64,000 bases of DNA from Phaeosaccion multiseriatum (Eukaryota > Protista > Ochrophyta, other classes), in NCBI GenBank assembly GCA_965112735.1, contig OZ218964.1:1860001-1924000 (forward strand). Direction: 5' to 3'. Of the stretch, positions 43,725 through 50,060 are shown one piece after another. The position numbers and the translations under genes are program-made. The notes under the pieces were generated by a model that did not search any database, was not told the DNA's origin, and saw only the letters and a list, made by a program, of their open reading frames with translations. Position 1 is the first letter of the stretch, and each line of letters opens with the position of its first letter.

Positions 43725-43994
43725 GATCCAGCGCTAAAATAAAACACTTGTCCCTCACCTTGCCAATCGCCTTTGGCGGCTACTGGAGCTCTACATTCTA
43801 CTCATATCGCCGATCCATGTTTCGTACCCATCGGCTGCCATCCCTCCCCTCTCACGCACACACACACAATTTCAGTTTCTTAGGTGATTCCTATGTCAAA
43901 ACAACTGTACATCCATCCCCGGCCTCCCCTCCTCTTCCCCCTCATTGCCTTGGACGATCGCGCCTTGAGGAAGCAGATAACAGCTCAGCTCACA

Positions 43995-44923
43995 ATGAGC
44001 GGCAACGAGGGAGGGGCGGGTGGACTAGAGGAGTACTGCATCCTGTCGCGCAGCTCCAAGGGCCGGGCGAGTGTGGCACTGATCAAGCAGGTCCTTGGCG
44101 CTAAGAACATCTTTGTGTTCGGAGAGCTGCTGGACACCCCCAATGTGCAGGCTCTCCGAGGCACCGAGCATGAGCCCTGGCTGCGGCTGCTCGAAGTCTT
44201 CGCCTACAAGACGCTTATGGAATACGAAGCCGAGAAGAAGTCTCTCCCCCCGCTCTCACCAGCGTACGCTCAGAAGCTTCGGATGTTGAGCATCATTTCC
44301 GTGTCGCAAAGGATGCAGGTGGTGCCCTACTCCCTCTTGCTTGAACAGCTGCGGCTGGAGAGCATTCGCCAGCTGGAGGACATTATAATTGATACCATCT
44401 ACGCGGGGCTGATCCAGGGCAAGCTGAATCAAATGGACGGGGCGCTCAAGGTCAAGTACGCCGTGGCGCGGGATGTGAGAGTGGAGGAGGTGGGGGACTT
44501 GCTGACGAAGCTCACGACGTGGGAAACGACGGTGCAGGTACGCGCAAGTTGTTGTGCAAGTGGTGGGACTTTTGATCTGTGTGCCTTGTGTGCCTATTGC
44601 CCCCTCCCCGGGCAACCCTTCAGGTTGTTGATGACTGTTGTTTGTTTGCTTGTTCATGTTCCCACGCACAGGGTATGCTTTCTACCCTAGGAGAGGCAGC
44701 GACCATAGCAGCGGACAAGCGCGTGGCGGGTGAGAATCGAAGGAAGAGCGTGGACGAGAAGAAAAAGCAAGTGAGGAAGGGACTGAAGGACAGCCGAATG
44801 ATGGACGACGGGATGACGGGCGAGTACGGGGGATACGACGACGAGGATATGGATTCGGACCGGCCGCGAAGGCTTGGGCGAGGGAAACGGATCCGTGGCT
44901 TCGAAGGTCGCCATAGGAGATAA
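43995..44923 (+). CDS. CSN7: COP9 signalosome subunit 7 (PCI domain)
   Basis: SSKGRASVALIKQVLGAKNIFVFGELLDTPNV, LLEVFAY, IRQLEDIIIDTIYAGLIQGKLNQ, ARDVR, LTTW. Confidence 0.9.
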
Positions 44924-44965: not shown

Positions 44966-47655
44966 TTAAGGGTGTACATAGATTGGTGGGGCCGTCTGGC
45001 CGCCCTCTCCGCGGACCATTGCCATGAGCTCCGTGGCGCTCGCCCTGTGTTGCGCATTCCTCTTTGCGCTGTCCACGCGTTGGAGACTCGCCAGCTGCGC
45101 AAACTGCACCGCCTGCTCCAAGCTCACCTTCCCGTCTCGCCAAATGGAGGCGAGCACCATGCCTCCTGCGAAGGCATCTCCGGCCCCATTCGAGTTGGCA
45201 GAGCTACCCGGGGAGAGAGCAAAGGCCGGGAGGGTCGCCTTCTTGCCAGCCCACTCAGCAGGCAGATTCTTCGATGCATGGCAATTCTCCGCGACCTGCA
45301 CGTGGGCTCCCTTGGTGCCCATGGTAATGGCCACCAGCCCCACTCCTCGCTGGATGAACCACTGCGCCAGAGTGGCCGCGTCCGAGGATTCAACTCCTGA
45401 CATGGACTTGGCTTCGTCCAGATTGGCGTGGAGTATGCCGATACACGGGTACGCCTGCCCGATAATGGACTCATGGTCTTGCTTCTTGCTATCCTCTCCG
45501 GTCTCGACTCCATTCACGTCTACACTAATCACCGCTCCCGCCAGCATATCCTTTGCTCGCTCCAAAAACCCTTTCAAGGCTGCGCCCTGCAAGCCAGGAG
45601 TGAGGTGAGGGTACCCGTAATGAAGGGCCGAGATTGGAGCGGGGTCTGCGGAAACCAACTCGGCAAGCTTGTCCACGACTTGCTGGGCCTCCAGCGTGGT
45701 GTTGGCCGCCAAATTGGCGTAGCAGCCCCTGCCCCCGTCGGAGAAGATGGGGAGCACTGCGAGAGAGGTCTGATCCGAGGCGCTCCGAATGACGTGGGTG
45801 CAATCCACCCCCGCTGCCTCCATCTGCCCCACAAGCTCCTCTGCATTGGAGTCTTGCCCCACCTTGGTCACCGCGAGCACCCCCGGCACCCCCAGGAAGC
45901 CCAAAGACGAAGCTGTCTGCGGGCAACTGGTGGTCGTGGTGGAGGTTTGGTGATGGTGGGGGTGTTGGTTTGGATGTATACTATCCTCTTGGCAGCACAC
46001 AAGCATGCTCTATCCGCCTCGCACGCACCTGCCACCCGCGAGGTACTCGATGGCCGAGAATGTGTTGATTGATTCATCCACTGCCTTCCCCGCCCCCCCT
46101 GTACTTCCCACAAGCTCCATGTCGAGGCAGCTCACCCCAGCGCACACCACGCGCCCTGTTACGCAAGACTTCTTCGTTGCGGAGTGATGTGAAGGGGAAG
46201 GTGTGGTAGCCGCGAGTGCCTTTTCCAACTCCTGCATCTGATGGAAAAAGCCCGGATCGGTGCCTTTCGCGCCTCCTTCAGGAACCTTGTAGTGGGGGGG
46301 GGGGGGGAAGGAAGCGGCATCACTCTCACTCACTCATCACAAGAACAATTGCACGCAAAGAAAAAGACACAAATGCGTATGCTTTTCTTACCTTGAAGAG
46401 ATAGGCCAGCGCTCTCGAGACAACAGGCTGCGGGGTGAGGCAGCGACTGAAGTAATCTGTCCACACTGCGCAGTCTATCATGAGCGGGACGCAGAGCACG
46501 CTGTCCATACACCGTGTGTAGGTGAGCATGGTGTGTGGGCTGCCCATAAAACCCAACGAGGTGTACTCCACAATGTCTCGCTTGTCGTCGCCAATGAGCG
46601 GCATGTACATGACCCGCACCTGGTGGTCAATGTCCTCCTCCCAGCTCTGGAAGATGTCCTTCTTCACCCTCATTTTGGCGTCGAGAGTCTTCTTGGTGGT
46701 GAGGTTGAGCATGTCATTGTTGCCTAGGTGGTTGCTGGAGGCAATGTTCCTAGGCTGCAGGCCCAGTGCCCGAATGTACTCCACGGCGGCCGTCTTGAAC
46801 TTGGTTTGGCCTGCTTTGAAGTCCGTGCCGAGCATGTAGCATCCCTTGGCGTCGGCCAGGAGCTCAAGGGCGGGACACATGGTGTTCTGGCTACCTCCAT
46901 TGACAAAAGAGCAGCCCTCCAGCACGGCTGCAGTGGCATAGAGCACACTAGGACTCACCTAGGTACCATGTGTTTGCGACATCGAGTGAGTCACTAACCC
47001 CTATTTCCTGTTTAAAGCAGAGAAAGCAACACCTCACCTCTTTATCATTGGCCGTTATTGCTGCCATGAGCTCCTCGGGCGTGGTGAAGAGGCGCTCCAT
47101 CGGCCTTTCTACGCTTGCGCTCCAAATCACTGTGGTGTGTCCCGTGACTCCATTGTCCGCCACAAAGCGGCGAATGTCAGCCCGCAGATGCGCCAGCTTG
47201 TCTGCCTGAGTAGCACAATCCGCGACATGTGTCGCTGACTCGTACTGAGATTCCCCAATAAAGTCTGCGTCCCAAATCCCCTTCATGACGGTACATTGGT
47301 TCATCTCCTCTCGGACTTGCCGCACGAGGTCGTAGTCCAAGATGCGGTATTCATAGAGCCCGTCCCCCAAAGGAGTGGATCGGATATCCCACCCGCCCAC
47401 GGCAGCCTTCTCCACATCTGCCAACGCATGTCGCTCGCGGTAGCCTCCCTTGCCGCCCTTGCTGGGCAGCTGAGTGATGCAGCCATTCCAATTCGCTTGG
47501 AGCCGGCAATGAGAGCCCTCCCACTCGAGTGCTTGCCGGTTGGCGAGTAGTCCAGCCAGCAAGGTCACCCCGTTGTTCCCAGCAAGCCCTACAACCAGTA
47601 CTCCGATCTTGCTGCTTACTCCTCCCTCCTCCGCCATTGTCTCGGAATCGTTCAT
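44966..47655 (-). CDS. Fusion protein (~800 aa): myo-inositol-1-phosphate-synthase-like domain plus PfkB-family carbohydrate kinase
   Basis: Exons 47655-47038, 46958-46392, 46285-46029 and 45926-44966 join in phase through GT-AG introns. MIPS motifs: [31 protein letters not shown]. PfkB motifs: [35 protein letters not shown]. Confidence 0.88.
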
Positions 47656-47693
47656 GTAGACTTCGCGCCGGATTGGTATTGCTGACTTATGTC

Positions 47694-47805
47694 ACACACT
47701 CACACACTCCCTCACTCACCCACCTTGCCCCCTCACCCCTTACTTACTTCCCCTCTCACTCACTCATATACTCAGTCAGTCACGCACTCACTCACTCACT
47801 CACTC
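47694..47805. repeat. Degenerate (CACT)n microsatellite upstream of the MIPS-PfkB gene
   Basis: Direct reading. Confidence 0.7.
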
Positions 47806-47935
47806 TCCCTCCTGAGTGATTTGTGTGAGAGACTATAGTCAAGCGTCTAGTCTGCTCTGATGCCCCCCGCTGGCCTGAAAAGGTAGGCCTACTCGGGGTC
47901 GGGGTTCCAAAGACACAGTGTTACTAGTATCGTAT

Positions 47936-50060
47936 TTACATGGCCTCTAATGCTTGACGCTCCGAGGCTAACGCTGAGACTTCTTCTCTGAGAGAGCCTG
48001 CTTCACTCTTAAGGGAGGTCAAGAGGAGAGAAAGTGTCCCCATCTGGACTTGGATGGCTTCCAGTCTTTTCCCATCTCCCTCCATTTCCAAGCCTTCCGG
48101 TGTCTCCAAGTTTAGCTTTGGGAAGGACGAAGAAAGAAAGTGAGGGTCGTGGCCGTCTTCCTTGGCAGACGCCGTCTTGTCGTACCCGAGCACCTCTGCA
48201 TCTTTGTCTTGCTGCTCCCAATCGACTCCCTTGTCTGACCACAGCTCCAGCCTGAACCACTCTTCGCGGTCGCCGGGATGCAGGGTGCAAGGTACGATGA
48301 CAAATCTGCCCGAAGGCAGGACAATTTTGGACGCAAAGTGTCGTCCCAAGAAGAAGCAGTCTCCGTGCGCCACTACGTCTCGAGCATTAAACCTGCGTGT
48401 GAAAACAACAAGCACATACCAATTGACGCTTGAGTAGAGGCAGCGAGCATTTCAGTAGCAAGGTATGTTGACAACATCGTAGCTCCCTCTTCTACTACAG
48501 CTCGCTCTACTTCTTCACACTCCTCCTACCTTCGGGCACAACGATAAGAAAGGCTCTACTTCTAAAAAAACTACTCTCTCTTTACCTGGAAATGCGAGTC
48601 CCCGTTCCATGTATCCGTACCACAACGAAGCCGAGCCCACTCTGAAATCGATGCCGGACTCCCACCAAGGAGTCCATCCGAGCGGCGGCAGCGGAGAGGC
48701 TGCTGCTCCCTGTCCACAAGTGGTCTCTTCGGCTCATAGCCACCGTCAGCGTCGTATGGTTGTGCTCCACGACAAACGGGTATTGAGGGTTTGTCACGAA
48801 GGAGTCGTACCTGGGTCCTCCCCCGGCATTCGCCTTCAAGTCTCCAGGAAGCCACCTGCCCTTGTACATCGTGTGACTGGGTCGGTGTTCCGCCCCGCCT
48901 CCTTCCTCGCCGCCTACACCTTTTCGACTCCTCTTGCCTTCTCGGCGACTGGCACTTTCTTGATGAACAGCCTGTGCAGTGAAAACCAAAGAAAAGTGAA
49001 GAAGGACGTCTCGGAGAGACATCCAAAACGCTTTGCCCCCACCCCCGCTTTCTGGAAAGCCTTTGGGCCAGAGCTCAGCCCGAGCCTGCGGATACAAGCG
49101 CCAGAGCATGTCCTCGTTCGCCCAGTCCCCGGACCAGTCTCCACCTTCCCACGGGTTCCTTAATTTTACCAAAAAGTCTCTCAAGGCTCCTTGGAGAGCC
49201 GTGGCCTCCACCACGACCCATTTTGCTTCCACAAGGGGATAAGCGTGTGCGCTCTTTAGACCCCGAGCCTCCTCTTTGCAGTCAGCGGTCCGATAGCATG
49301 TCACAACGGACCGTCTCTTTAGATTCTCCTCCAGGGCCTGCGCGACCTCCTCAAGCCCTTTCTCATCCTTGCTCTCTCGCTCAGAGAGAACGGTTCTCAT
49401 GACGGGGAGGCCCGACAGGTCTCGTAAACCGTAGTCAACACAGCCGTGCGACAAGTTCTCGTAACAGCCCGAGAGCTTGGCATATGCCTTTTCAATCAAG
49501 GGGCCCCACGTCTCTCCACCCACTGAACCAGTGAAGGAATAGAGGGGCCTGCCTGCCCGGTCACATGGCAACCGATCATCAATGTGCACATAGCGCCATG
49601 CCCCCTCTTTAAAGAACTTCATTGTGTAGAGCCCCAACGATTCCCCATATACACTGCTCACCACGATCTGTTTCAAGACGGTGGGCTGAGCTGCAATCGA
49701 ATTCAATGCACTTATAAACCACCGGTTGGGAAGACCGCCCTGCCGCAAGTCTCCAAGCTGTTTGCACACCGCTGTACGATGGGGCTTGTTCTTCTTCTTT
49801 TCCTCCGGAAGAAAGATGGGACAATCATAGCCGCTGACCTCGAGGGCTGAGAGACGATTCCAGCACACTAATCCAGCCGGGAACGACGCGCGAGGAGGGT
49901 CCTGTGGGGTCCGATACAGAGCGGAAGGGCCGAAGAAGTGGACATCCTCAAAGGTAAGCAGCCCGGCCCGCTCCAGCTCCGCAGCAATATCCTCTTCCTT
50001 CTGGCACGCCTCGTCGTCGGTCGGATAGTCGCAGTAGAGTTGTCGACCAACTGTGCCCAT
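47936..50060 (-). CDS. Calpain-like protein (CysPc plus domain III and C-terminal coil); catalytic Cys position is Arg
   Basis: FEDVHF, LRQGGLPNRWFISAL, WRYVHIDDRLP, WGPLIEKAYAKLSGCYENL, HAY, LRNPW, NAGGG...NPQY, GRFVIVPCT. Confidence 0.88.

Follow-up and report, generated by a model that had tools for sequence, protein, structure and literature searches.

In a 64,000-nucleotide stretch of the genome of the ochrophyte Phaeosaccion multiseriatum (assembly GCA_965112735.1, contig OZ218964.1, positions 1,860,001 to 1,924,000 of the forward strand; referred to as the window, with positions counted from its first letter), the minus strand from 47655 to 44966 carries one gene with four exons and three GT...AG introns, whose 800-residue product joins a myo-inositol phosphate synthase (MIPS)-like domain to a kinase domain of the PfkB family. 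This is almost certainly a real fused gene. With a probability of about 0.5, we propose that it encodes a two-enzyme protein of cyclitol metabolism that operates in parallel to the canonical enzyme INO1, with the kinase placed on the cyclitol side. On the sequence comparisons described below, the fusion is an old and widespread feature of ochrophytes and not peculiar to this genome, and the gene in the window adds a new orthologue to a MIPS variant that is catalogued yet uncharacterized and that has been deposited since the Ectocarpus genome.

Structure of the fusion gene

The gene model consists of the following segments, listed in the direction of transcription.

47038..47655, minus strand: exon 1, with the ATG at 47655; 206 codons; N-terminal NAD-binding part of the MIPS-like domain
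46959..47037, minus strand: intron 1, 79 nt, GT...AG, phase 0; the orthologue alignment passes from NDKEV to SPS exactly here
46392..46958, minus strand: exon 2, 189 codons; catalytic part of the MIPS-like domain
46286..46391, minus strand: intron 2, 106 nt, GT...AG, phase 0; LAYLFK|VPEGGA is unbroken in orthologues
46029..46285, minus strand: exon 3 (junction exon), 85 codons plus 2 nt, in frame and stop-free
45927..46028, minus strand: intron 3, 102 nt, GT...AG, phase 2; a gap of 34 codons falls precisely at this intron in the orthologue alignments
44966..45926, minus strand: exon 4, 320 codons plus TAA; bulk of the PfkB kinase domain

The first-pass annotation of this DNA had placed the end of the MIPS domain and the start of the PfkB domain in a single stop-free exon and had described all introns as phase-compatible; reading the minus strand confirmed the open frame of exon 3, and the intron phases were found to be 0, 0, and 2. 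Within exon 3, the C-terminal helix of the MIPS domain (46285-46214) is followed by a 19-residue linker (46213-46157) and by the beginning of the PfkB domain (46156-46029), which comprises the first strand, the substrate aspartate (SCLD), and, at its end, the GG dipeptide (AGG), and which aligns with the stretch of the orthologues that covers positions 4-50 of the PfkB profile. The remaining exons display further motifs of the two domains. Exon 1 contains GLAGNNG, the Rossmann motif, and WSASVERP (47124-47101), which is specific to the paralogue, exon 2 a further paralogue-type motif (46739-46710) together with AKMRVKK, GDDKR, and CMDS, and exon 4 the NxxE motif (NLDE, 45424-45413) and the GAGD motif (45187-45176). 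The final codon of exon 2 (46394-46392) specifies the lysine of YLFK, which is equivalent to K489 of the yeast enzyme. Although the length of intron 3 is divisible by three, it contains an in-frame TAG, so that its retention truncates the protein to the MIPS domain with a short kinase stub, and the full kinase is made only if the intron is spliced. A run of 15 C is located in intron 2 at 46291-46307.

The domain assignments were obtained by a Pfam scan run exon by exon, in which exon 3 was too short to score by itself; the scan bore out the predicted combination of MIPS and PfkB domains. Specifically, exon 1 matched positions 1-201 of PF07994 (E = 6e-35), exon 2 matched PF01658 in full (positions 1-107, E = 7e-26) as well as positions 203-271 of PF07994, and exon 4 matched positions 53-287 of the PfkB family PF00294 (E = 3e-21). 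All scores exceeded the gathering thresholds, with 121.6 and 61.7 bits for PF07994 (cut-off 25), 91 bits for PF01658 (cut-off 27), and 76.5 bits for PF00294 on exon 4 alone (cut-off 25.8).

When six fused algal orthologues were compared with the window by tblastn, the matches were collinear and all three junctions fitted (NDKEV|SPS, LAYLFK|VPEGGA, and GG[S]CPQ); these orthologue matches are far beyond chance. The public sequencing runs that contain the locus are four in number, stem from a single sample, and yield genomic contigs without the exon joints; support for the gene model is therefore comparative.

The MIPS-like half and the spread of the fusion among algae

Inositol phosphate synthase is, in the textbook description, a stand-alone enzyme. 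The MIPS-like half of the Phaeosaccion protein shares with canonical INO1 (the family of yeast 1JKI, and 9m53) the PF07994 plus PF01658 fold family of eukaryotic type, the Rossmann motif, the catalytic lysine and aspartate residues, and the C-terminal helix; it differs by motif changes, by the missing N-terminal extension, by the fusion to a kinase, and by being a second copy. In searches of the PDB, the eukaryotic MIPS 9m53 was matched with E values of 7e-25 for exon 1 and 1.6e-36 for exon 2, while the matches of exon 2 to Bacteroides-type (2e-14) and archaeal (4e-9) MIPS were weaker. An origin of this half from the short archaeal or bacterial enzymes was rejected, since the matches to eukaryotic MIPS are much stronger.

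In the yeast enzyme, the residues described as essential are the phosphate loop S323-T326 and the lysines K369, K373, K412, and K489 (PMC8287684). All four lysines are retained in the Phaeosaccion protein, where AKMRVKK, GDDKR, and YLFK align with FRSKEISKS, GDSK, and LKAP, respectively, and 22 fused proteins show no variation at the equivalents of K369, K373, K412, K489, D320, D356, and D438. The phosphate loop S323-G-Q-T326 reads AGQT, the serine being replaced by alanine throughout the paralogue clade. As phosphate is bound in this loop of the yeast enzyme via backbone amides, the function of AGQT may be kept. The Rossmann motif reads GLAGNNG in place of the canonical GWGGNNG, and the domain begins about 15 residues ahead of it, so that the long N-terminal extension of canonical MIPS is missing. 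Three changes characterize the paralogue clade as a whole: WTANTER has become WSASVER, SGQT has become AGQT, and NNDG has become NNDM. In the Phaeosaccion protein, CEDS has also become CMDS, and each of the motifs WTANTER, DFKSGQTK, SYNHLGNNDG, and NTCEDS of the canonical group is altered (the last to RCMDS). With its NAD motif and four catalytic lysines retained and its phosphate loop changed at Ser323 alone, the MIPS-like half is probably an active NAD-dependent cyclase.

A separate canonical INO1 gene, for which the first-pass annotation had advised a check, was located on another contig of the same genome (G000:C1:2847483-2850647); it has about 10 exons, every canonical motif, and the N-terminal extension. 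The exons in this region (G000:C1:2846500-2851700) are short, and a long run of CAG/CTG type, translated as poly-Q or poly-L, is located in one of its introns. Canonical MIPS is likewise found in Ectocarpus (CBN77493.1) and in the diatoms Thalassiosira, Phaeodactylum, Fragilariopsis, and Fistulifera (S1 File of PMC6742357). Because the canonical enzyme is present alongside it here, in Ectocarpus, and in diatoms, the SASVER-type protein constitutes an extra, specialized copy and not the housekeeping enzyme. Diatoms possess the canonical WTANTER-type (S1 File of PMC6742357), and a scenario in which their sole MIPS is of the SASVER-type was therefore rejected.

Proteins with the same architecture are found across the ochrophytes. 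Of ten longer HMMER matches obtained with exon 4 and scanned with Pfam, seven carried MIPS domains N-terminal to the kinase, and word searches with the complete fused protein P0011 gave about 25 clusters combining PF07994, PF01658, and PF00294 among the matches listed. These clusters come from the brown algae Ectocarpus, Cladosiphon, and Nemacystus, from Chrysoparadoxa, Phaeothamnion, the pelagophyte Chrysophaeum, and the diatoms Epithemia and Entomoneis, and from many marine metagenome contigs. Specific examples are the proteins of Ectocarpus siliculosus (CBJ31745.1, UniProt D7FUT9, 759 residues; a fuller model, CAB1117308.1, has 836), Cladosiphon okamuranus (827 residues), Chrysoparadoxa australica (822 residues), Phaeothamnion confervicola (CAM9166901.1, 857 residues), and Chrysophaeum taylorii (KAJ8599987.1, 836 residues). 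The Phaeosaccion protein resembles them in the order of the three Pfam domains, in collinearity over the whole gene, and in the paralogue motifs of both halves, whereas sequence identity is limited to 43-49% for the kinase half and to 60-81% for the MIPS half. In the tblastn comparison, it was about 60% in exon 1, 77-79% in exon 2 (with brown-algal orthologues), and 43-44% in the kinase part. Two fused open reading frames (ORFs), P0177 and P0287, are derived from MMETSP transcriptomes, and a partial one, P0321, from a transcriptome assembly of Octactis; thus a fused ORF exists on mRNA in relatives. A 375-residue stand-alone transcript is known from Fibrocapsa.

In quick trees, both halves of the Phaeosaccion protein group with the brown-algal/PX group (18-row clade, 95*; 11-row clade, 97*), and of the four main clades into which the MIPS-like tree divides, three contain fused forms; as both trees are midpoint-rooted, the direction of the event, fusion or fission, is not proven by them. 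In many diatoms, the halves are encoded by separate genes, each from its respective clade; Seminavis robusta has the 480-residue MIPS-like P0248 and the 360-residue PfkB protein P0306, and Amphora has P0239 and P0307. These pairs place both clades in one organism, as in Phaeosaccion, but in contrast to the latter the genes are separate and lie on different contigs. The joint presence of the two split halves in one diatom, alongside the fusion in other algae, corresponds to a Rosetta-stone pattern and points to one shared function.

Two peculiarities were observed among the diatom proteins. In the fused forms P0282, P0287, P0177, P0180, and P0286, an HMG box (PF00505) is inserted after the GAGD motif and before the last kinase helix, and it is also seen in ORFs derived from transcriptomes; a DNA-binding module within a metabolic kinase is odd. 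The stand-alone MIPS-like proteins P0248, P0190, P0259, P0213, P0239, and P0186 share a conserved C-terminal tail, GI(I/L)(T/S)xEQ(A/V)xxL, which is missing from the fused forms and may dock the separate kinase.

Literature searches directed at the fusion, at diatom and brown-algal MIPS, and at cyclohexanetetrol found no paper describing or testing the fusion. As an entity, the fusion had already been deposited with the Ectocarpus protein CBJ31745.1/D7FUT9. The deposited fused proteins are named just "myo-inositol-1-phosphate synthase" or "unnamed protein product," and the database name "MIPS" hides the kinase half. Brown algae, diatoms, pelagophytes, and their relatives keep a second, diverged MIPS that is tied by fusion or co-occurrence to a kinase of its own. 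That the pairing is conserved in algae of such ecological dominance implies that a branch of their cyclitol or inositol phosphate metabolism has gone unstudied.

The kinase half and its possible substrate

In the PfkB half, the GG, NxxE (NLDE), and GAGD motifs are intact, and both domains are quite likely to be catalytically active, judging from the conserved motifs. The kinase is single-copy in the genome. When exon 4 was searched exhaustively by HMMER in a set of 1.84 billion representatives, only 344 proteins were retrieved at E <= 0.001, i.e., a small clade, whose members were seen in this analysis only in algae. The clade has invariant motifs of its own, namely VLPIF..GGRGC, GYPH, DLNG, and QRVD; the invariant lid arginine of GGRGC and the histidine of GYPH hint at an anionic substrate. 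Structures were predicted for the orthologue P0169 and not for the Phaeosaccion protein itself. The model of its kinase domain (P0169:445-827; predicted local distance difference test, 91.9) shows a ribokinase-like alpha/beta fold with a beta lid, and Foldseek searches with this domain retrieved YdjH (E = 6.5e-22; template modeling [TM] score by target, 0.82). Overall, the nearest folds are those of E. coli YdjH (3h49/3in1), ribokinases, and IolC (2qcv), with Foldseek E values of 1e-21 to 1e-18 and TM scores by target of about 0.8, and the closest NCBIfam models belong to the same group; the algal kinase is set apart from all of these by an identity of about 20%, by scores 4-6 fold under the family cut-offs, and by its own invariant motifs. 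Searches for the kinase substrate in NCBIfam, in the PDB (sequences and profiles), with Foldseek, and in the ESM Atlas returned generic PfkB neighbors alone.

Kinases of the PfkB/ribokinase family that convert inositol to inositol monophosphate are represented by maize LPA3/MIK, Thermococcus MI3K, and Thermotoga TM0415 (PMC4765147, PMC5931981). The Phaeosaccion kinase is related to them at the level of the superfamily and, like them, has a connection with the provision of inositol phosphate. In the mechanism we favor, the MIPS half would most likely act on glucose-6-phosphate or a closely similar hexose phosphate, which it would cyclize to an inositol phosphate through a cycle of NAD+-dependent oxidation, aldol reaction, and reduction, and a flexible linker of about 20 residues would tether it to the kinase with its ribokinase fold. 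The kinase, in turn, would phosphorylate either free myo-inositol, as the plant and archaeal inositol kinases of PfkB type do, or the inositol phosphate product, and the protein would supply a pool of phosphorylated inositol distinct from the free inositol that arises through housekeeping INO1. A kinase on the cyclitol side is favored since fusions usually join steps of one pathway, since glucose-6-phosphate needs no dedicated supplier, and since plants, archaea, and bacteria are known to have inositol kinases of PfkB type (PMC4765147, PMC5931981). Both activities, their substrates, and their coupling are what we infer from the domains, motifs, and conservation of the protein, from the co-occurrence of the split forms, and from the separate INO1; for the assignment of a cyclitol to the kinase in particular, we put the chance slightly below even. 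The bifunctional cyclitol-pathway enzyme suggested in the first-pass annotation accordingly appears reasonable in that motifs are kept in both halves and the two clades co-occur fused or split, although the position of the kinase before or after the cyclase is not fixed; its further suggestion of an algal osmolyte found no support in anything in this analysis.

Besides the genomic nature of the public runs, several observations weigh against this proposal. The substitutions SGQT to AGQT, TANTER to SASVER, and NNDG to NNDM could mean that the substrate of the MIPS half is altered. An AlphaFold model of full-length P0169 features two well-folded halves connected by a disordered linker, with a predicted TM score of 0.53, so that no fixed interface or channel is predicted. 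For the kinase, the nearest structures, with about 20% identity, are YdjH, ribokinases, pseudouridine kinase, and IolC; among the best 60 of 109 PDB profile matches, none was named as a myo-inositol kinase. In NCBIfam, the ribokinase equivalogs were not reached (TIGR02152, 51-71 bits versus 299.65; NF008353, 47-51 versus 341), nor was IolC (TIGR04382, 45-48 bits versus 300), though the latter match spans the full length. A stand-alone kinase of the clade, P0017, comes from Porphyridium purpureum, a red alga (KAA8493705.1, under the name "putative sugar kinase YdjH"), where no MIPS-like gene was present within 10 kb and the neighborhood held nothing relevant. On a contig of an unidentified eukaryote (L015:7903-11113), another stand-alone member, P0006, is arranged head-to-head with a Sugar_tr/MFS transporter gene; this is a weak lead, which fits a kinase for free sugar equally well. 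The transporter gene appears in three pieces.

Part of this evidence would be accommodated if the kinase acted upstream, converting a free hexose, such as sugar from the breakdown of vacuolar beta-glucan, to the hexose-6-phosphate that feeds the fused cyclase. Fructokinase and ribokinase are among the nearest named families, a stand-alone relative adjoins the transporter gene, and the clade occurs in Porphyridium without a known MIPS partner. Nevertheless, every family match is far under its cut-off, glucose-6-phosphate is abundant in central metabolism and a dedicated feeder is not obviously needed, and the invariant arginine and histidine described above would rather suggest an anionic substrate; on balance, we regard an upstream hexose kinase as unlikely, though as a rival to be taken seriously.

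Alternatively, the chemistry of the MIPS half itself may have changed, such that another sugar phosphate is cyclized or another cyclitol, e.g., an osmolyte precursor, is released, with the kinase preparing or modifying an unusual substrate. The retention of canonical INO1 here, in Ectocarpus, and in diatoms and the fixed substitutions in three canonical active-site motifs speak for this explanation. Bacterial natural-product pathways are known to include members of the MIPS family that act on other substrates. On the other hand, the catalytic lysines, the aspartates, and the phosphate-loop backbone are all kept, and the literature search on cyclohexanetetrol found nothing tying genes to this compound. 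To our knowledge, no cyclitol matches the range of the clade, from brown algae and diatoms to pelagophytes and dictyochophytes. We consider this explanation rather improbable, though likewise a rival to be taken seriously.

If the protein functioned mainly in regulation or in the nucleus, where its enzyme halves would sense metabolites or make inositol phosphate locally on chromatin, the HMG box within the kinase domain of the diatom orthologues, including the transcriptome-derived ORFs, would be accounted for, but such a function is very improbable for the Phaeosaccion protein, as the box is missing from this protein and from all brown-algal/PX orthologues and the catalytic motifs are strongly conserved. 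That the fusion is an artifact of the gene model, with two neighboring genes or transcripts that are never joined and a kinase starting, for example, at an ATG that lies in frame within HQMQEL of exon 3, could be argued from this ATG, the genomic-only runs, and the stand-alone Fibrocapsa transcript, yet it is hardly credible, since exon 3 is free of stops from the MIPS end to the PfkB start, the spliced MIPS frame stays open until 44966, and the identical fusion recurs in more than 20 independent clusters, assembled transcripts included.

The proposal of a two-enzyme protein of cyclitol metabolism can be extended, with rather low odds, to a module that comprises the MIPS paralogue together with the PfkB kinase dedicated to it, whether or not the two are fused, and that would have gone unrecognized throughout the ochrophytes as a system apart from INO1. 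Its output might take either of two forms, to which these low odds apply jointly. In one version, glucose-6-phosphate would be converted to a doubly phosphorylated inositol, and the kinase would be the missing first kinase of the lipid-independent route to inositol hexakisphosphate (InsP6); in the other, the product would be the phosphate of a non-inositol cyclitol.

Neighborhood of the gene

Downstream, the fusion gene converges with a gene on the plus strand (43884-44923) encoding COP9 signalosome subunit 7, with CSN7_HB and PCI domains. The ORF that is probably the last exon of this gene ends at 44923, 43 nt from the stop of the fusion gene at 44966, and consequently the 3' untranslated regions of the two genes must overlap. 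Just ahead of the start codon, from 47690 to 47840, lies a simple repeat of (GAGT/GTGA)n-like type, at which the public contigs break; its portion from 47768 to 47819 was treated as a repeat in the comparison with public reads. The next gene upstream, on the same minus strand (47936-50060), encodes a calpain-type cysteine protease with Peptidase_C2 and Calpain_III domains.

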